Shown here: positions 1 through 9,060 of the stretch, in pieces
How the letters are laid out: each line of letters starts with the position of its first letter
Numbering within the stretch: position 1 is the first letter of the stretch
Assembly: GCA_001643675.2 (NCBI GenBank)
Contig: LSRY02000013.1
Span: 806,001-870,000 of the forward strand
DNA from: Monocercomonoides exilis PA203
Lineage: Eukaryota; Protista; Preaxostyla
Reading direction: 5' to 3'
Length of the DNA stretch: 64,000 nucleotides
The notes under the pieces: generated by a model
Databases searched by the model: none
Told to the model about the DNA's origin: nothing
What the model saw: only the letters and a program-made list of their open reading frames with translations
Translations under genes and position numbers: made by a program

Positions 1-878
1 TATGATCATTTCAATCTGCATCGGAAATACAATTCCCTCTGCCACATCCACCACAAGAATCACTCCATCACTCACTCTAATGGCAGCTGTTGCCTCGTCA
101 TAAAAGTTTGTGTGGCCAGGAGTATCCATTATGTGAAGAAGATATGACTTCATTTGCCCATTTTGGACAACTAAAGAAAGGGGACAACTTTTAACAGAAA
201 CTTTTCGTTCATGTTCATCTTTTCGCACTGCAGTGAATTGGGGCTGTTCCAGATAATTAGAATAGTTTAATATTTATTTATGTTATGATTATTGTTTTAA
301 GATAAAGAACAGATGAGATAATAAGTGCAAGACTAATATCAAATAAACCTTCATTTGCTCTACGTGCGTAACTTTTATAAAAAGATCCATCAACGAAGTT
401 TTTCCTGAGTGAAGTGGTCCAACAACGCAAACATTTCTAATCATTTCAGGCATTGTCGATAATTCCGCAAGAAATCTCATGCTAAATCTCGTTTCAGGAT
501 ATTTGCTAGTATCTGTAATGACTAAATCAAAACGTTTAGTATCAACAGGTTTAACAATAGGCTCTTCAATTGGTTGTGCATCTTCATCTTGCACAAGAAC
601 TTCTGCGCCGGGGTAAAGTGACTCTGCAGTTGGAAAGCGAGATTTCTCAACAATTGCTATATAATGTCATCGAGATTTTAAAATGGCAATTTTTATATTG
701 AGACAAAAAATATTTAAATTAATAAACCAGTTTCATGTGAAATGGTCTCTTCTTCAACACTCAATTTATCTTCTTGCTCGCTTGGCTCTTGTTCAGATTC
801 GCTCATAATTTCTTCACTGTCGCTAAAATCATCGCCTCCAGCGAGTAAATTGCCAAATTCATCAAACGTGGCGTCCAT
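1..878 (-). CDS. EFTUD2: U5 snRNP 116 kDa GTPase (Snu114/EFTUD2), 5' part; runs off the left window edge
   Basis: ATG at 878 gives MDATFDEFGN plus an acidic N-terminus. Removing GT-AG introns 657-727 and 244-348 gives VQDEDAQPIEEPIVKP, G1 GPLHSGKTS, DEHERKVSVKS and G3 MDTPGHTNFYDE..AAIRVSDG, all typical of Snu114. Confidence 0.93.
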
Positions 879-1062
879 TTCACTTATTAAGGTCAGAACT
901 TGATCTTTCAAAAGAAACTTTCATTTTTCAGGCAAGTCACAATTTTATTTTATGATATTTAACAAATAAATGCGTTTTGAAATAAAGAAAAAAAGTTTGA
1001 TCGCACACATATTAAATAATTATCACAATTTATCAAGCTGATTTCAAGCTTTATTTGATTAA
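879..1062. promoter_or_regulatory. Short divergent intergenic region (putative bidirectional promoter)
   Basis: Only 184 bp of AT-rich DNA separate the head-to-head ATGs at 878(-) and 1063(+). Confidence 0.5.
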
Positions 1063-4000
1063 ATGACCAATGCATTACAGCGTAATCGCCCAATAGATTT
1101 GAGGCGCATTCACACAATCATTGACTTTAATCAAGATGAGGTTGACAACGAAATAAATATGATGAATATGATGTCGTTCCTTGATCGTCAGCCTTTTTAT
1201 TCTATGATGTCTGACAGGGTGAATAATGTATTATTTATTGGAGGGCTTTATGATTTCTTTCAGGTTGACTCCTGCTTCTTGAATGGAGGCTTTACAACAT
1301 GCCCAAACTTTCGCTTTTCAACTCCTCAACATGCTCTTTCTATATTGGAACGAGGTGACAGATATGATGTCATTATTAGTATGCATGCAACGAATGATGA
1401 AACAACATGGGATTTTGTTCGAAAAATGAAAAGTCGCCATCCAACAGGAACGATCTATCCAATTGTGTTTGAAGTTGACCAGCACTATCCAGTCTATGAC
1501 GATGACCTTCGCGTTCGTATTTTTATGTGGAATGGAAATCCTATGCTTTATCTAGCTTTAATTAAATTGGTTGAAGATAGAAAGAACATGAAGTGCGACG
1601 TTATGGACGGTGCATGTGGTATTATTTTGTATGTGGAAGACACATGCGCCTATTACTCTGAATATCTTCCCATGATTTATGGAGAAATCTTTCAGAGGAC
1701 CATGTCATTTACAGGTCGATCTGCAAAGCATGCAATCACAAGGAAGCGATCTCGACCAAAAATAGCGTTTTGCTCAAGCTTCGAAGAGGCAGTAAGGGTG
1801 ATCCAGAAATTTGATATGAAAGTTCAGGGAGTTATCTCAGACATTGAGTATCCACTGACAAACAGAAACGATGGGCCTACAAACAACTATCTAACTTACC
1901 TTCTTGACAACGGTTTCTACACAAAAGAGCAAGTGGAGAAATCAGCAGGCATAATTTTGCGTGACTTAACACCCAGAACGAAGTATTTGAGATGTGAGCC
2001 AATGCCCCGTATTCCATACCTGTTTATCTCCTCCACCATCTCCAAGCAGTCTGAGGCCAAGAAATACCCCAACTGCCTGTTCGCCCCGAAAGATTCAACA
2101 GAAGTGCAGACAGCTGTACGCCGCTTCCTCGACACATTCATCGGACTCTCCCCTGTCTTCTATGCGCTCGACCCAACTACTTGCACCCCTGTCCCTGGTC
2201 TGCGTGGAGCACACGACCACAACGAGCTGATGACGCTGGTTGCACAGATGCCGTCGGAGAGCCTGCTGTACCACGCGCAGTGCGAGAACTTCAGCCAGTG
2301 GCTGTTTGCCCAGGGCGATTTTGGAGTGTCGATGTTTCTGCAGCGGCTGCGCGTGTCACAGATGAAAGGTGACCCGGATCGACTGAGGGGAATTCTGCTG
2401 AAAGCCCTCAAAAAGTACTCGACAGCACACACCCGCGGGATCTCCATTGACTTTGATGCGCATCTGCTGAAAGAGCGGCACTTCTTCATGACAGTCGGCT
2501 CAGGAAGCGTCGGCGGCAAAGCACACGGGCTGCTGTTTCTGGACTCGCTCATCTCAGACATCGACATCGCCCTCGACAAAGACCCGCTCTGCAGCTCCTC
2601 TTCGCTGATTGTCGGGGTGCCCCGCACGCTCATCCTCACTTCCACGCTCTACTCTGCGTTCTTCGAGATCCACAACCTGAACCACCTCCGCTCGCACAAC
2701 CTGGACCACCGTGTAGTCCACGACTCCTACATCGCCTCTCTCTTTGTGCAGTGCCCTCTGCCTGCTGATGTGCTCAACCTGCTAAGCGTCTTCCTAGATG
2801 CCGTACGTGTTCCCTTGGCTGTGCGTGCCTCTTCTCTTTTGGAAGACTCCCGCAGGCAGCCAGTGGTGGGCGTGTATGCCTCGTATTTCCTGGCAAATAA
2901 CCACCCGTCCTTGCAGGTGCGCCTCCAGCAGCTGTCCATTGCCATCCGGCTGATCTACGCCTCGTCCGTCTGCCACCGCGCCAGGAACCTCAGAAAGAGT
3001 CTGAACGTGCCATCATCTGCGGAAGGGGTCGCTGTGATGATTCAGGAGATTCCCGGTGCTGTACACTCACAGGGCTCTTCTTTATTCTACCCGCACGCCA
3101 CGTTCATTGCAAAGTCCAGGAATTACTACCCTGCACGCACTGCTAACCCGTCCGCAGCGCAGAATCAGCCTTCTCTTTCATCATCTTCTTCTACTTCGTC
3201 ATTGAATGCCAATAATAACAATAACAATAATAACAGTTCACAGTCTGGTTCTACCAGCAGCAACACCCCATCTGTCTTCGATGGCGATGCCCTCGCCACC
3301 ATCGGCTTCGGCGCCTCTATTCGCGACCCCCAAAAGCAGAACTCGTCTTCCTCCAAACTGAAGAAATTCCGCTTCTGCCCAGCGCACCCTGAGATCAGCT
3401 ACTGCCTGCAGCCCGAGGACTACCCGAAGACGACGCAGCAGTCGTTCATTGCGATGGACTTGGATGCAGACCAGAGCATATCTGAGAGGAGGCTGCTGAG
3501 TGTGCAGAAGTGGCAGGTGCACAGGGCAGAGGTGCTGCTCGACAGAAGCTCAGCTTTGTCGTCAGGAACAGACAGCCCTTCGATTCATAGAAAATCGGTG
3601 GAGATGCCACAAACACCAGGTGAAATGGCAGAGAATGAGAGACACTCAGCTCAATCTCAGTTGCAATTGCAGCAACAGCAACTGAGGCAAAGCTCTCCTT
3701 CTCCAATTTTCATGGCCTCCCCTTCCATTTCGCAGTATCCCACCCCCACTCTCTCCTCTGCCTTGCTTGCCCGCGGTACAGCAACCTTCACTCCGCCTTC
3801 CTCTGTCTTCTCTGCCTCTCCCTTTGGCCAGCCTCAGCTCGCTCAGTTCACTCCTGGCTCTTATTCTCCTTCTTCTTATGTGTCACCTTACCACTCTGCC
3901 ATCGCAGACACCACAAGACTCGCACAGCCCAGCGCCTCCCAGCCATTCGCTGGCTACGTCCCTCCATCTTCCTCCTCTCCTTCCCCTTCTCCTTTCTCTT

Positions 4001-7000
4001 GCTTCTACTCTCCTTCCTCATACACATCCCAAATCTCTGGCTTAGTGCCCTTCCATCGCCTGCCCACACAAAACCCGGCTGCTCAGGTTGGCTCTATCAG
4101 CCCGCTGTACACCAGCCATTTGGCTCCTTCTGATGCTCTCCAGACACAAATGGCTCAACTGTCGCTGTCTTCTCCTTCTCCTTCTCCTCAGCCACTTTGC
4201 TCAAATACGTCTGCTTTCATTAGACTCAATAATGGAAATAACAACAACAATAATAATAATAATAATAGCAATAATATTTCCAATGTCCAATCTCCAACTC
4301 CTCTCCAATCATCCTCTCCTCTTTCTCAACCTCCTCTCTCTGCCTCCTTCCCGGCCACATCATCTGTTTCCTCATCTGATTCATCAATGAACCCATCTCT
4401 TTGCACACAACCTCTTTCCCAGCTGCAGCCCCTCTGCACACTCAACATCAGCCAAAATGCATCTTCAGCTGCTTCAGGCACAGACTCATCCACACAATCT
4501 GCTCCTGTCAGACAGCTTCCGACGAAAGTTGAGGGACAGCAGGGCTCTTCTTCCCCTTCTTCTCCTTCTCCTGTTGCACACACACCTTCTCCTCAGATGA
4601 TGAGTGAAAATGGAAATGGAAGTGGAAATGGAGTGAACAATCATAATGACATTGTATTAAATTCAACTTCAATCAATGAAAATTCCATCGGAATGAATGA
4701 CACAGCCAAAAGTGCGACGTTTTTGGGGCTGGCAGAGTCTGCTGCTGAGAAGAAGGAGCAGATAAACACATCAGAAAAGAGTCAGAAAAATGACTCGAAT
4801 GAAATAAGTTCGAAAAAACAAGAGAATAATCAAGAAAGTTCAAAAGAAAGTGCTCAAGTGAAGAGTCGTGCTACTCCGCTTTCCATCTCTTCTTTCATGC
4901 AGGACGAGTTCAGCTCATCTTCTGAGCTGTTGAATAGCTATTTCTCTGACTTCTCTTCTTCTTCTTCTTCATTTTCTTCATCTTCTGGATGTAGTTTTTC
5001 TGCTTCTTCTTTTCTGCCCACTCCTTCTTCTTCTTCCTCCTTCTCCTCTTCTTCTTCATCTTCATCATCATCTTCTTCTTCCAACTCCTCCGGTCTCATT
5101 CCCATCCAATCATCATCCAATCAGCCAGCCGATGCTCCTCCTCTCTTCACCGTCCCTTTGCTTTCTCCGCCTTCTGACGGGTTCAGCTATTCTTCTCCTA
5201 CTCTTCCATACGACGCCTCCTCTACCACTTCTGCTTTCTGCCCAAGGCCTTCTTTCCTCTCTTCTTTCTCTTCAGCAAATGCAGAAAACAATCAATCGTC
5301 GCAATTAACTTCGTCAATTTCATCTTCATCATCATCTTCTTCTTCTTCTTCTCTTCAGCCACAACTTCCACATCACCCTTCTGCCCAAAAACCCTGCCTC
5401 CCTTCCTCTCCTTCTCCAACACCCACACCTCTTTCCTTTGCTCACGATCAACGTCCTCCTTCTTCATCATTATCTTCTTCTTCCTCCTCCTCTTGTTCTT
5501 CCACCATATCCTCCGCCTCCTCTTCCACCTCATCCACCCCCACCCTCCCCTCTCAGCAGTCTGTTGCCCTGCCAACTGCCCTCCGCCCTCTCCCTCCTCG
5601 TGCCACTCCCCTCCCATTCAACACCGCCACCCCTCCGCCTCGCCCAACCACACCCAATTTGGCTGACAGAAACCACACCTCTTTCCTCAACCCATCAACT
5701 GTGGCGTCCCCCATCCATTCACTCACCCACCCTTTCCTCTCTTCTCCTCTCAGCTCTCCTTCTCCACAGGTCACACTCAACGCCTTCCGCTCTGACCCGA
5801 CCCTTCTCCCGTGGATCAGCGACGAGATCGGCCCTCTTTCAGACCCAGACATTCCCTTCCTGCCTCCACTCTCTCCAGCACCCGATGACAACACAGACCC
5901 TCTCTTTGACCCCGTCTCCTTCGGCCTCCCGCAGTTTCTGGTGGAAGAGCCGCTGGACACTGCTGAAGACGAAGGCCTGCTCACTCAGCTGGGGTGTGAG
6001 GTGTATAACACAGAAACGCATATGGTGAAACCCTTCCACCCATCTCTCCGCAGCTCGTTTGGCGGGGCAAGCACATCTGGTGGAATGTTTTCAGGAGATT
6101 ATTCATTTGGAGATGACAGCAATTGGTGGATGGCATCGCTGCAGTCAACTTCTTCTGAGTCCTCCTCCTCTTCTTCTTCTTCAGAAGCAGCATCTGAAGG
6201 AAGTTCCAGCAATAAGGCTGATGGCAGTGATGGAGGTGATAACACCAGTGCAGGATATGCAAAGGAGCACGATGCAGATTACGAGCCATCCGAGTTTGTG
6301 AAAGAAGCAGCAAAGAGAAGAAAACAGAGGAAAGATGAAAAAGGCCGGAGAGACCCACGAGACTTGGTTGATCGAAGCAAAAACATCAGATGCGTGACAT
6401 TCAACAAGATCATTGGAAACAAAGCACAGCCAGGCAGTCAGCAAGGAAAGCAATCATCATCTTCTTCTTCAACTTCATCCTCCTCCTCCTCTTCCACTTC
6501 CATTGCGCTTGGGCGAGTGCTGATGAATGTGCTGAATGTGACAGAGAAAGCGATGGGGCGCCCAGTCAGTGTAACCTGCTCTATCAACTTGAACACCACG
6601 CCGTGGGAGCTGTGGCTGCTTGAGTTGAGGCCACTGGAGATTGATGTGTCAGGCGATGTGTCTGTCGGGCTGAGGCATCAGATGGGGCAGATTATGGAAG
6701 ACTTGTTCAACATCTCAGTAGACGAGCCAAATGCTGACTTGCTCGCTTCTTCTTCTTCTTTGGGAGGTGCATGTGCAGCGATTCAGCCATTGCAAGCGGA
6801 GAAATTACTGTCTGCCTGCAAAAAACAGCCAGTGAATCGTATTGAAAGACTTCTGGTTAATTCGAATCCACTTTTCTCTCTGTATACACACCGTGTGTTG
6901 TGTGCTGCCTCGACTGTGCTGGGAGCACCGAGTATATCCCCACCAATATTTGATCTCGTGTTCATCGACCCGTGGCGCTTCGACAAGACAGCCACGGTTG

Positions 7001-9060
7001 ATGCAGCAAGAGAGATGGCCATCGTGAACAAGATGTTTTCTTCTGCTTCTTCTTCATCTGCTGCTGCTGCTGCTTGTGCTGCTGATGGCTCTGCTCGAAA
7101 TGACTCACCATTATGTCACTCTGCTTCTTCGCAGCAGCCTTCTCCTTCCACTCCCTCAATGTCTGCTGAAGGAGACAGCAGGAGAGGGTACATTGTTGTT
7201 GGACTGGGAAGATGGGGAACCTCAACTGCATCTTTGGGCATTCCTGTGCAGTGGAGCGAGATCAACAACGCGACGTGTGTGATTGAGACAGGCATCGCCA
7301 GAAAATTCGAGATTGAGTCGTCTTCAGCCTCGCATTTCTTGCACCATCTAATTGCTTCAAAGAAAGCGTGGATGTTTGCTGACCCTGCCTGCTTACAGCC
7401 ATCAACAGTGTCTGCGTCTTCCTTGTCTGCTGCAATTGACTGCTCAGAAGGGAAGAGAGGGAGACAGGGATTTCGAGTGGGAATGGACTGGTTTGACTGG
7501 GCGTGGGTAAAGAGACAGATGGTGAAGCACACAATGTTCTATGGGAAGCATGTGGTGTGTCTCAGACTGGACAAAATGGCAAGTGCAGAGAAGCAGAAAG
7601 AGATGTGCCATGTGCTGGAGCAGAAGGAGTACAAAAGCCCAATCACGGCGTTTGAGATCGAAATGATGAACTTTCTGGGCAAGAACGGTGAAGGAGCAGA
7701 GAATTCTGATGCGAAAAATGTATCAGATAAAACTGAAACTGTAGAAGGATGTGAAAAAGAAGAGAAAGTGGAAGAGAAAGAAGAAGACGATGACCCCAGC
7801 TGCTTGAGAATCATTGTTGATCCGACAAACATGAGAGGCCGAGTGATGATCGACAGCCAGTCGATGCCATTGCCAAGTGTCAGCATCTTCACAGTCCAAA
7901 ACTCAATTCCTTTGCAATCACCTCAAAACAACATCCAAAAATTAGCTGCCAAAGAAAGCTCGACTTCGCATCTTCTGATCTCATCCAGCGATTCCTTGAC
8001 GCCTCACACGTTCACACGCCCCGCCAGAACAAGTGCGAAGACAAGGAGCTGTGCTGTTCCTAAGCCATATGCTCAATCTGCCAAGGGAGAATACGAAACC
8101 AACACACAATCACTGATCATCATCAACCCAGACGATGAATCAACATCACATGAGGGAAATGTGCCAAGTCGAAAGATGAGAGATTCCGATGAATGCAGCG
8201 TGGAGAGCATGGAAAGCCGAGAAGAAAGAGGCAGAAAAAGCAGCACACGCACAGAGTCGATGGATGACATCATTCAGACAGTAGATGATGACGATGATGA
8301 CTTGGACTCTGACACAGACACGGACATCGACGACGACCGCTCAGCTGCCCTTACTCAATCATTTGATGGCTCCTTCTCAAGCTGCCCGAACTCTCTCTTG
8401 GAAATGAAACGCAGCTCTCTCAATCGAATGGCACCTGCCCCAACAATCGATGCAGCGGCAATAACCGCTACGGCAGGCTCAGCTGACAACTTCATTGGAT
8501 CCGATAAGAGCGACACCCAGCCAGTTCCACTGCCACTGTTTTCTATGCCAAAACCAAGAGAGTCAACAAAACCACAATTGCAATCACTTTCTCTTTCGCT
8601 CAATTCTATTTCCAATAAACCTGTTCCTCTCCCTCCAAAACCGCCTTCTCTGCTCCGATTGAGTTCACCTGCTATTAAGAAATCTTCATCCAATCCATCA
8701 TGTCATTCATCAGCATCGCCTCCTGCAATCGCTGCTGGCTGCTCGAGCATTGCCTCTCCTTCTTATCAGTCTAATTCTGCACTGATTCCACCAACCTCCA
8801 ATGAATCAGCACAGTCAGTCAATCAGACCAAGCCACATGCTTCGACTTCTCCTCTACAGCTCCTATTGCCCCAGCCAGACTCAGTAACAATTGCCACCTC
8901 TGCATCTGCCTCTCAAGTGACGCCAGTTGTGGTTGTCTCGCCAGCCACTCCAACTTCTTCGTTTTCGCAGTCGTCCCTCCTCTTTTCACAGGACACAGTT
9001 CCTGACGACATCCCATCTGTGGTGTCTTCGTCGCTTGAAGTGCAGCATCATCAGATGTAA
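1063..9060 (+). CDS. Receiver-domain + PEP/pyruvate-binding (PPDK_N ATP-grasp) protein of bacterial type, with large Ser/Pro/Asn-rich insertions
   Basis: Single 2665-aa ORF. Motifs FMWNGNPMLYLALIKLVED, IILYVEDT..YSEYLP, RSRPKI, VISDIEYP, GSGSVGGKAHGL, PLAVRASSLLEDS, VMIQE, LLELRP and GYIVVGLGRWGTS..LGIPVQWSEI..SHFLHHL match the bacterial (Bacteroidota-type) receiver/PEP-synthase-like family as I recall it. Confidence 0.85.
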   Translation: MTNALQRNRPIDLRRIHTIIDFNQDEVDNEINMMNMMSFLDRQPFYSMMSDRVNNVLFIGGLYDFFQVDSCFLNGGFTTCPNFRFSTPQHALSILERGDRYDVIISMHATNDETTWDFVRKMKSRHPTGTIYPIVFEVDQHYPVYDDDLRVRIFMWNGNPMLYLALIKLVEDRKNMKCDVMDGACGIILYVEDTCAYYSEYLPMIYGEIFQRTMSFTGRSAKHAITRKRSRPKIAFCSSFEEAVRVIQKFDMKVQGVISDIEYPLTNRNDGPTNNYLTYLLDNGFYTKEQVEKSAGIILRDLTPRTKYLRCEPMPRIPYLFISSTISKQSEAKKYPNCLFAPKDSTEVQTAVRRFLDTFIGLSPVFYALDPTTCTPVPGLRGAHDHNELMTLVAQMPSESLLYHAQCENFSQWLFAQGDFGVSMFLQRLRVSQMKGDPDRLRGILLKALKKYSTAHTRGISIDFDAHLLKERHFFMTVGSGSVGGKAHGLLFLDSLISDIDIALDKDPLCSSSSLIVGVPRTLILTSTLYSAFFEIHNLNHLRSHNLDHRVVHDSYIASLFVQCPLPADVLNLLSVFLDAVRVPLAVRASSLLEDSRRQPVVGVYASYFLANNHPSLQVRLQQLSIAIRLIYASSVCHRARNLRKSLNVPSSAEGVAVMIQEIPGAVHSQGSSLFYPHATFIAKSRNYYPARTANPSAAQNQPSLSSSSSTSSLNANNNNNNNNSSQSGSTSSNTPSVFDGDALATIGFGASIRDPQKQNSSSSKLKKFRFCPAHPEISYCLQPEDYPKTTQQSFIAMDLDADQSISERRLLSVQKWQVHRAEVLLDRSSALSSGTDSPSIHRKSVEMPQTPGEMAENERHSAQSQLQLQQQQLRQSSPSPIFMASPSISQYPTPTLSSALLARGTATFTPPSSVFSASPFGQPQLAQFTPGSYSPSSYVSPYHSAIADTTRLAQPSASQPFAGYVPPSSSSPSPSPFSCFYSPSSYTSQISGLVPFHRLPTQNPAAQVGSISPLYTSHLAPSDALQTQMAQLSLSSPSPSPQPLCSNTSAFIRLNNGNNNNNNNNNNSNNISNVQSPTPLQSSSPLSQPPLSASFPATSSVSSSDSSMNPSLCTQPLSQLQPLCTLNISQNASSAASGTDSSTQSAPVRQLPTKVEGQQGSSSPSSPSPVAHTPSPQMMSENGNGSGNGVNNHNDIVLNSTSINENSIGMNDTAKSATFLGLAESAAEKKEQINTSEKSQKNDSNEISSKKQENNQESSKESAQVKSRATPLSISSFMQDEFSSSSELLNSYFSDFSSSSSSFSSSSGCSFSASSFLPTPSSSSSFSSSSSSSSSSSSSNSSGLIPIQSSSNQPADAPPLFTVPLLSPPSDGFSYSSPTLPYDASSTTSAFCPRPSFLSSFSSANAENNQSSQLTSSISSSSSSSSSSSLQPQLPHHPSAQKPCLPSSPSPTPTPLSFAHDQRPPSSSLSSSSSSSCSSTISSASSSTSSTPTLPSQQSVALPTALRPLPPRATPLPFNTATPPPRPTTPNLADRNHTSFLNPSTVASPIHSLTHPFLSSPLSSPSPQVTLNAFRSDPTLLPWISDEIGPLSDPDIPFLPPLSPAPDDNTDPLFDPVSFGLPQFLVEEPLDTAEDEGLLTQLGCEVYNTETHMVKPFHPSLRSSFGGASTSGGMFSGDYSFGDDSNWWMASLQSTSSESSSSSSSSEAASEGSSSNKADGSDGGDNTSAGYAKEHDADYEPSEFVKEAAKRRKQRKDEKGRRDPRDLVDRSKNIRCVTFNKIIGNKAQPGSQQGKQSSSSSSTSSSSSSSTSIALGRVLMNVLNVTEKAMGRPVSVTCSINLNTTPWELWLLELRPLEIDVSGDVSVGLRHQMGQIMEDLFNISVDEPNADLLASSSSLGGACAAIQPLQAEKLLSACKKQPVNRIERLLVNSNPLFSLYTHRVLCAASTVLGAPSISPPIFDLVFIDPWRFDKTATVDAAREMAIVNKMFSSASSSSAAAAACAADGSARNDSPLCHSASSQQPSPSTPSMSAEGDSRRGYIVVGLGRWGTSTASLGIPVQWSEINNATCVIETGIARKFEIESSSASHFLHHLIASKKAWMFADPACLQPSTVSASSLSAAIDCSEGKRGRQGFRVGMDWFDWAWVKRQMVKHTMFYGKHVVCLRLDKMASAEKQKEMCHVLEQKEYKSPITAFEIEMMNFLGKNGEGAENSDAKNVSDKTETVEGCEKEEKVEEKEEDDDPSCLRIIVDPTNMRGRVMIDSQSMPLPSVSIFTVQNSIPLQSPQNNIQKLAAKESSTSHLLISSSDSLTPHTFTRPARTSAKTRSCAVPKPYAQSAKGEYETNTQSLIIINPDDESTSHEGNVPSRKMRDSDECSVESMESREERGRKSSTRTESMDDIIQTVDDDDDDLDSDTDTDIDDDRSAALTQSFDGSFSSCPNSLLEMKRSSLNRMAPAPTIDAAAITATAGSADNFIGSDKSDTQPVPLPLFSMPKPRESTKPQLQSLSLSLNSISNKPVPLPPKPPSLLRLSSPAIKKSSSNPSCHSSASPPAIAAGCSSIASPSYQSNSALIPPTSNESAQSVNQTKPHASTSPLQLLLPQPDSVTIATSASASQVTPVVVVSPATPTSSFSQSSLLFSQDTVPDDIPSVVSSSLEVQHHQM

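Follow-up and report, generated by a model that had tools for sequence, protein, structure and literature searches.

A very probably ancient acquisition of a prokaryotic receiver and PPDK_N gene in the nuclear genome of the oxymonad Monocercomonoides exilis

We analyzed a window of 64,000 nucleotides from Monocercomonoides exilis PA203 (assembly GCA_001643675.2, contig LSRY02000013.1, positions 806,001 to 870,000 of the forward strand, read here as C7:806001-870000). At window:1063-9060(+) lies a single ATG-to-stop open reading frame (ORF) of 2665 codons plus stop, whose conserved segments match, in order, a family of bacterial proteins of about 1000 amino acids (aa). We consider it highly probable that the forerunner of this gene entered the Preaxostyla just once and long ago, when an early ancestor of the group took it up from a prokaryote, most probably a bacterium. 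The genome we searched comprises 82.3 Mb in 101 contigs, the dimensions of the published Oxford Nanopore (ONT) assembly of this strain (PMC8767320).

The ORF has no stops in its own frame, while the other five frames of the same stretch hold 78-131 each, so the frame is maintained as coding along its whole length, the low-complexity parts included. Its GC content is 0.49, versus 0.23 in the flanking intergenic DNA. The contig that carries it is 1.86 Mb long, with intron-containing eukaryotic neighbors. A preliminary description of this DNA had placed the ORF head-to-head with a spliceosomal gene, and we identified that gene as Snu114/EFTUD2, which contains introns, runs divergently on the minus strand and has its start codon about 186 bp from that of the ORF. 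Matches to the N-terminal part of EFTUD2 and the beginning of GTP_EFTU fall in its second exon (window:292-594(-)), the gene runs on upstream of the window through EF-Tu domain 2 and EF-G domains III, IV and C (L101:1528-4479(-)), and GT..AG introns, read by eye, lie between its pieces. The same description called the ORF intronless, which, judging from the sequence, holds for every homology-bearing block. With its Snu114 neighbor, the GT..AG introns there and the introns of its own paralogues, the gene is physically integrated in a eukaryotic chromosome, which makes the ORF a genuine gene of the oxymonad nucleus.

The features of the gene and its upstream neighbor, in window coordinates, are as follows (AF2, AlphaFold2; HMM, hidden Markov model):

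289..911 (~714-911 and 289-594), minus strand: first two exons of Snu114/EFTUD2 (Pfam matches, introns by eye)
1063..9060, plus strand: the whole ORF, one of four paralogues of the genome
1195..1572, plus strand: REC1, a pseudo-receiver, aa ~45-170 (AF2 model and Foldseek; PF00072 and PDB receiver matches on bacterial homologues)
1615..2097, plus strand: REC2, a receiver with a helical insert after strand 1, aa ~185-345 (acceptor residues at canonical strand ends)
2110..2472, plus strand: helical linker domain, aa ~350-470 (AF2 model; weak DUF5752 match in bacterial homologues)
2506..3153, plus strand: ATP-grasp (PPDK_N) part 1, aa 482-697 (Pfam, BLASTP; K486, R588, E594, D595, S607 and Q661 kept)
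3361..3531, plus strand: ATP-grasp part 2, aa 767-823 (family HMM positions 656-714)
3532..5856, plus strand: insert 1, ~775 aa of S/P-rich low complexity within the ATP-grasp (sequence composition)
5857..6048, plus strand: ATP-grasp part 3, aa 1599-1662 (38% identity with the C6 paralogue; roughly HMM positions 705-741)
6049..6501, plus strand: insert 2, ~150 aa of low complexity within the ATP-grasp (sequence composition)
6502..6636, plus strand: ATP-grasp part 4, aa 1814-1858 (the bacterial ExE...QxR motif reads S1836, T1838, E1854, R1856)
6886..7572, plus strand: C-terminal domain, likely of swivelling beta/beta/alpha fold, aa 1942-2170 (GRWG at 2049-2052, LGIPVQW, H2091 at nt 7333-7335)
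7573..9057, plus strand: C-terminal tail, 495 aa of low complexity (no Pfam match, no similarity to the C6 paralogue)

The bacterial protein consists of a pseudo-receiver, a receiver, a helical linker, a PPDK_N-type ATP-grasp and a C-terminal domain, and it ends about 170 aa past the ATP-grasp. In Pfam terms its members show a weak Response_reg, a weak DUF5752 and a complete PPDK_N, followed by those roughly 170 residues without a Pfam family. We found the first 700 residues of the window protein to match hundreds of such proteins at 28-31% identity and 92-96% query coverage, and a Streblomastix fragment at 40% identity. By BLASTP against the bacterial member P0006, aa 45-696 align to 20-646 (31% identity, E 4e-84), with further collinear matches of 1816-1857 to 768-809 and of 1945-2159 to 829-969, the latter including the GRWG..LGIPV.W signature. 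Against a family HMM of 990 positions, built from 117 bacterial members, the window protein scores 527 bits in five collinear pieces that cover positions 14-938, and a sixth homologous piece, aa 1599-1662, is recognizable via the C6 paralogue. These results bear out the ordered match to a bacterial family that had been read from the letters alone.

The window protein and the bacterial family thus share their domain order from end to end, the GRWG..LGIPV.W signature, the C-terminal-domain histidine and the acceptor set of REC2. They differ in that the window protein is 2.7 times longer, has the ExE...Q residues replaced, lacks a glutamate dehydrogenase (GDH) neighbor and keeps 82 of 115 near-invariant bacterial residues (93 of 115 in paralogue C14). 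The difference in size is due to the low-complexity inserts and tail: the inserts are rich in S, P and N (insert 1 is 26% Ser), those in the ATP-grasp split it by about 925 residues in total, and a loop of about 42 low-complexity aa lies inside the C-terminal domain.

The bacterial family is widespread: its members, among them P0006, Prevotella P0072 and Ignavibacterium P0042, represent more than 12 phyla and at least 598 species, and it is abundant among Prevotella-type and Bacteroidales gut metagenome proteins. Its members carry public names such as 'PEP/pyruvate-binding domain-containing protein', 'CheY-like chemotaxis protein' and 'phosphoenolpyruvate synthase'. A literature search found no paper on the family and none on DUF5752, a search pairing PPDK_N with 'response regulator' returned unrelated subjects only, judged by title, and three Preaxostyla genome papers (including PMC8767320 and PMC6759080) do not mention the family in their main text.

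The M. exilis genome holds four paralogues on four contigs, each in a long open frame: C7, the window gene (2665 aa, 527 bits against the bacterial HMM), C6 (3195 aa, 584 bits), C14 (C14:62401-67994; 1806 aa, 685 bits) and C19 (C19:511331-518757; 2413 aa, 471 bits). For C14 and C19, each frame was searched separately and exons were not joined. Both carry a short GT..AG intron in the first receiver domain, at an identical codon position directly behind an ..EE(E/D)E motif, and this spliceosomal intron is a gain that postdates the arrival of the bacterial gene in the lineage.

We searched 1.84 billion representative proteins exhaustively with phmmer, which returned 1514 hits, and inspected the best 150 of them. 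Among those 150, the top matches were three Blattamonas nauphoetae proteins and one from Paratrimastix pyriformis, together with Streblomastix, and the named eukaryotes were Preaxostyla only, plus one separate clade holding an MMETSP transcript. Orthologues are therefore present in Blattamonas, Streblomastix and the free-living Paratrimastix, placing the family in every sampled Preaxostyla genus. A separate word search for long proteins yielded one metagenomic protein only and missed Paratrimastix, and we gave its blank no weight.

We built trees from match-state alignments assembled piecewise out of HMM hits, and in all analyses the Preaxostyla formed one clade among prokaryotic sequences. 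The clade received a support of 100 in FastTree; an SH-like approximate likelihood ratio (SH-aLRT) of 99 in IQ-TREE quick searches under LG+C20 with posterior mean site frequencies (PMSF), with five and with nine eukaryotic sequences; and SH-aLRT/ultrafast bootstrap (UFBoot) values of 100/100 for all nine Preaxostyla sequences in IQ-TREE under LG+F+G4 with 1000 UFBoot replicates. The bacterial origin proposed in the preliminary description is upheld by this nested position. In the LG+F+G4 tree, group A (100/100) is made up of Streblomastix, (C7, C6) and (Blattamonas P0122, P0123), Paratrimastix P0146 is sister to group A (98.6/100), and group B is (C19,(C14, Blattamonas P0229)). With bacteria as the outgroup, the A/B duplication falls before the Paratrimastix-oxymonad split, and by the same rooting the C7/C6 duplication would have occurred in the Monocercomonoides line alone. 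Under both models, P0135 is the closest prokaryote (sister at 88.3/97 under LG+F+G4). It is a metagenomic bacterial protein from a 438-kb bacterial contig with a GDH directly downstream.

Since an orthologue occurs in free-living Paratrimastix and all Preaxostyla sequences fall into one fully supported clade, the acquisition predates the oxymonad gut lifestyle. After the transfer, the family split into two groups, gained an intron in group B only and swelled by disordered S/P/N-rich inserts. Ancient bacterial acquisition, taken together with the phospho-transfer mechanism that we develop below, is on balance our best overall explanation of the gene, and the two parts are not equally secure.

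The N-terminal region of the protein was modelled with confidence. For aa 30-480, AF2 gave a predicted local distance difference test (pLDDT) of 90.2 and a predicted template modelling score (pTM) of 0.90, with two flavodoxin-like domains followed by a helical domain, and Foldseek matched this model to PleD and 3luf tandem receivers (probability up to 1.0, E 1e-4 to 1e-5). REC1 has the flavodoxin-like fold without an acceptor Asp at the end of strand 3, where it reads S-M-H (T or M in bacteria). REC2 carries the full phospho-acceptor set of E192/D193, D260, S323 and K343 at canonical strand ends, and these residues are nearly invariant in the family. The profile check proposed earlier for PF00072 drew a blank on the window protein (no match at E <= 0.1); among bacterial homologues, scores lie at 18-35 bits, on both sides of the cut-off of 30.2. 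PleD-type regulators resemble this arrangement in having tandem flavodoxin-like receivers, one with and one without the acceptor Asp. They differ in that the order of true and adaptor receiver is reversed, in that REC2 of the window protein has a helical insert of about 45 aa, and in their output, which is GGDEF in PleD and ATP-grasp here.

Six-frame searches of the genome found no HisKA (PF00512) and no Hpt (PF01627) domain, with control genomes responding, although short exons or divergent kinases could escape such searches. Two 970-aa open frames in the genome have Response_reg matches (C7:240500-243450, L113:90-2951:-, and C23:70708-70956). By Pfam, the former joins a receiver to a class I cyclic-nucleotide phosphodiesterase, an arrangement known from Dictyostelium RegA.

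The single Pfam domain assigned to the window protein is PPDK_N (PF01326), which spans aa 482-667 with E 4e-14 and 52.9 bits (cut-off 27), in agreement with the domain call of the preliminary description. The best solved relative by sequence is rifampin phosphotransferase (RPH; RPH-Lm, PDB 5FBS/5HV1; PMC4844700), which matches the first half of the ATP-grasp at E 1e-7. K486, R588 and S607 of the window protein align with RPH K22, R117 and T136, all of which are required for rifampin resistance, and the K22A mutation also abolishes activity in vitro (PMC4844700). RPH combines an N-terminal ATP-grasp with a C-terminal His carrier domain and has no PEP/pyruvate barrel, an arrangement that resembles the ATP-grasp and carrier-like C-terminal domain of the family described here. 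Unlike this family, RPH has a rifampin-binding domain, has no receivers and bears its carrier His in a TSH motif recognizable by PF00391.

In the second half of the ATP-grasp, at the positions of the bacterial ExE...QxR motif, the window protein has S, T, E, R and C6 has N, S, K, R; the motif is similarly altered in Blattamonas P0122 and P0123, the latter of which is also without the GGK lysine. The whole motif is intact in C14 and Blattamonas P0229, and C19 and Paratrimastix P0146 keep both Glu, their Q..R positions being unaligned. RPH in which the Mg-coordinating Glu was mutated to Ala is still fully active (PMC4844700). This dispensability of the Mg-binding Glu suggests that the ExE...Q substitutions alter the chemistry without necessarily abolishing it; catalysis by the window protein is probably altered or weakened.

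The earlier statement that the protein has no phospho-His swivel motif proved partly wrong. There is no TSH motif, and Pfam scans found no PF00391 phospho-His domain in the window protein or the homologues scanned. The domain nonetheless models as a swivel fold and contains a nearly invariant histidine. The AF2 model of aa 1930-2175 has a pLDDT of 76.6 with a confident core, and the top matches of an exhaustive VIA-align search with it include a DRTGG domain (Z 6.7), the C-terminal domain of B. stearothermophilus pyruvate kinase (Z 6.2), the RPH His swivel domain (Z 5.7), the PPDK phosphoryl-carrier domain (2fm4, 1vbg; Z 5.5) and the Enzyme I N-terminal domain (2wqd; Z 5.3), with many other swivelling beta/beta/alpha proteins lower in the list. 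H2091 is nearly invariant across 124 sequences (bacterial context SQGTHFFQN) and opens a helix that directly follows a strand and loop, presumably the same place that the carrier His occupies in PPDK-type domains. With modest Z scores and a blank profile comparison, the modelled domain is likely a swivelling beta/beta/alpha fold, and its homology to phospho-His carrier domains is plausible.

An ELFV-type GDH of about 450 aa lies beside the family gene in 52 of 80 bacterial loci, from many phyla, which substantiates the association put forward for this family in the preliminary description, and in 41 of the 52 it is immediately adjacent and co-directional. No histidine kinase was a conserved neighbor in the 80 loci. 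GDH 'reversible inactivation' in Bacteroides is reportedly described in older work, for which our literature search returned nothing. The GDHs of M. exilis are 55-65% identical to the family-linked bacterial GDHs (57-65% for most), the neighbor of P0135 is not the closest of these, and the identities give no co-transfer signal either way.

Two further observations concern these enzymes and loci. The GDH genes of M. exilis are near-identical to each other (C2:1786146-1787420, C11:255743-257017 and C8:582333-583607). A second PPDK_N protein lies close to the first in 11 of the 80 bacterial loci (e.g., L020:8376-10943 and L031:8733-10937), and that of L020 is without receivers and continues into the start of a nucleotidyltransferase domain.

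These features suggest a possible mechanism. As in PEP synthase (PEPS), PPDK and RPH, the ATP-grasp would pass the beta-phosphate of ATP to H2091 on the swivel-like C-terminal domain. The phosphate might then be handed on to D260 in REC2 of the same protein, forming an internal ATP-His-Asp relay; alternatively, a partner linked to glutamate/2-oxoglutarate metabolism might receive it, REC2 then serving as the switch. In group A, the residues presumed to bind Mg have changed (in the window protein, from E, E, Q to S, T, E), and the protein may serve as a regulatory partner of the intact group B paralogues or be regulated by them. We regard this mechanism as a whole as tentative, something possible rather than probable. 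Its fullest form would be a self-contained phosphorelay, captured by the Preaxostyla ancestor, in which a PPDK-type ATP-grasp rather than a Bergerat-fold kinase charges a His carrier and then the protein's own receiver Asp, with an output that controls GDH or nitrogen balance; that form we consider speculative and distinctly unlikely.

Several points count against the mechanism or against parts of it. By Pfam coverage, E778, E780 and Q799 of the motif are presumed to correspond to E323 and Q335, which bind Mg in C. symbiosum PPDK; a literature search for these two PPDK residues returned nothing, and phmmer of the second half of the ATP-grasp against the PDB gave no usable match. The step from H2091 to D260 is entirely inferred. 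Foldseek of the C-terminal domain model against the PDB returned nothing, hhalign of the domain's alignment against a PF00391-type alignment gave a probability of 0.2%, and Z scores of 5-7 may reflect no more than a common arrangement. In M. exilis the three GDH genes are on other contigs, none linked to any paralogue. The full activity of the RPH Glu-to-Ala mutant, for its part, speaks against reading the substitutions in the window protein as a loss of catalysis.

The strongest rival to the proposed mechanism is that the group A paralogue is a pseudoenzyme or scaffold, without any catalysis and kept for nucleotide binding or a purely structural task, with its inserts in a eukaryote-specific role and enzyme activity in group B only. 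The replacement of E, E, Q by S, T, E here and by N, S, K in C6, the loss of the GGK lysine in P0123, the interruption of the ATP-grasp by some 925 aa of low-complexity insert and the lower number of near-invariant residues kept than in C14 are all in keeping with this idea. However, K486, R588, S607, E594, D595, Q661, H2091 and the REC2 acceptor set are all kept, and the RPH mutant shows that such a Glu can be dispensed with. Moreover, the substitutions are of the same kind in group A orthologues of two genera: one site holds T or S, and the other E, D or K. Such a pattern suggests a changed site more than decay. We rate a pseudoenzyme as unlikely.

Alternatives to an acquisition from bacteria concern the source of the gene. 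An Asgard connection would have an archaeon resembling the Heimdallarchaeota as the donor, or else vertical inheritance from the archaeal forebear of eukaryotes with loss everywhere else. It draws on the phmmer search, where the best-scoring prokaryote was Heimdallarchaeota LC_3 OLS23807 (279 bits), on an authentically Asgard contig. Two results weigh against our account of the origin and the distribution of the family. The approximately unbiased (AU) test does not reject a grouping of Heimdall with Preaxostyla (p-AU 0.75), and the tree constrained to that grouping lies 21.6 log-likelihood (lnL) units above a short free search. In addition, a separate clade (P0171/P0215/P0252), nested by Eisenbacteria and away from the Preaxostyla, includes an MMETSP transcript, so that Preaxostyla may not be the sole eukaryotes with the family; eukaryotes may here have acquired the family a second time, independently, or the clade may represent RNA of bacteria present in a culture. 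On the other side, the margin of OLS23807 over bacterial hits is about 3 bits, P0135 is sister to the Preaxostyla at UFBoot 97, and the Heimdall sequence groups elsewhere in both trees, pairing with P0035 in the PMSF quick tree. The family was seen in a single Asgard sequence as compared with at least 598 bacterial species, and vertical descent would require losses in nearly all eukaryotes. We therefore judge an Asgard source improbable and retain bacterial acquisition as the preferred origin.

With regard to the sequences just named, the Heimdallarchaeota LC_3 gene (MDVS01000037.1, L099:8001-11042) is a complete family member with Arf/Ras/Roc-type GTPase neighbors and no GDH neighbor. The MMETSP-containing clade (P0215/P0275/P0171/P0252; L098:108-3506) has members of 1069-1194 aa on single-gene contigs of about 3.3-3.8 kb.

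A recent transfer from a gut bacterium, for example of the Bacteroidota, into Monocercomonoides, the donor and route envisaged in the preliminary description, would suit both the gut endobiont lifestyle of this genus and the commonness of the family in Prevotella and Bacteroidales gut metagenomes. The free-living Paratrimastix and two other oxymonad genera have orthologues, however, and the 100/100 Preaxostyla clade contains deep internal duplications. Identity to any bacterium is about 30%, Bacteroidota sequences sit in other parts of the trees and no Bacteroidota or gut donor is picked out. The orthologues and the clade together led us to reject a recent gut transfer, which we hold to be very improbable.

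Public annotations of the Blattamonas, Streblomastix and Paratrimastix homologues would make the protein an ordinary metabolic PEP synthase or PPDK, in line with PPDK_N being its sole Pfam domain. The family does share the PPDK_N ATP-grasp with the PEPS/PPDK/PTS Enzyme I superfamily, and its modelled C-terminal domain matches the swivelling carrier-domain fold found there. It differs in having no sequence-level carrier match and no PEP-utilizers_C barrel, for which Pfam gave no match in the window protein or six homologues, and neither the receivers nor the differing C-terminal domain fit such an enzyme. On the NCBIfam PEP synthase equivalog, the window protein scores 36.8 bits and C14 scores 34.5 against a cut-off of 883, and bacterial and Asgard homologues reach 27-66 bits on PEP synthase models with cut-offs of 598-883 (37-66 bits against 598-883 in our weighing of this alternative). 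The missing barrel, the missing PF00391 and scores far under the curated cut-offs led us to reject a canonical PEPS or PPDK, an identity that we regard as exceedingly improbable. On sequence grounds, the family is one of uncharacterized receiver and PPDK_N proteins distinct from canonical PEPS/PPDK, as had been anticipated, and our analysis corrects public names that assign PEP synthase or PPDK to proteins without the defining parts of those enzymes.

Bacterial contamination or a chimeric assembly, for which we found nothing in favor, has next to no chance of being the explanation and was rejected, given the 1.86-Mb contig with its intron-containing eukaryotic neighbors, four paralogues on four contigs, two of them with a spliceosomal intron, huge low-complexity inserts absent from bacterial homologues and orthologues in three independently sequenced relatives.

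A bacterial gene in Preaxostyla is of a known kind. Other bacterial genes acquired by this group, such as those of the SUF system and the arginine deiminase pathway, are likewise prokaryotic, fixed in the nucleus and present in several Preaxostyla, and Karnkowska et al. 2019 listed 103 candidates for lateral gene transfer (LGT) (PMC6759080). What is new here is the signalling-family source, the unusual architecture and the strong link of the family to GDH. The gene adds a signalling-type family, rather than a metabolic enzyme, to the bacterial genes fixed in a lineage that later lost its mitochondria, with an acquisition dated before the Paratrimastix-oxymonad split. For the parent bacterial family, the conserved His and Asp offer the testable hypothesis that nitrogen metabolism is under an unrecognized post-translational control.

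Two minor observations may be added. The convergent downstream neighbor of the ORF, at window:9618-18167(-), is open over 2849 codons and matches nothing in Pfam. Among the bacterial members, some Bacteroidota proteins carry an extra N-terminal region of about 570-800 residues, as in P0121/P0155 (1557 aa) and P0223 (1524 aa, Bacteroidales).

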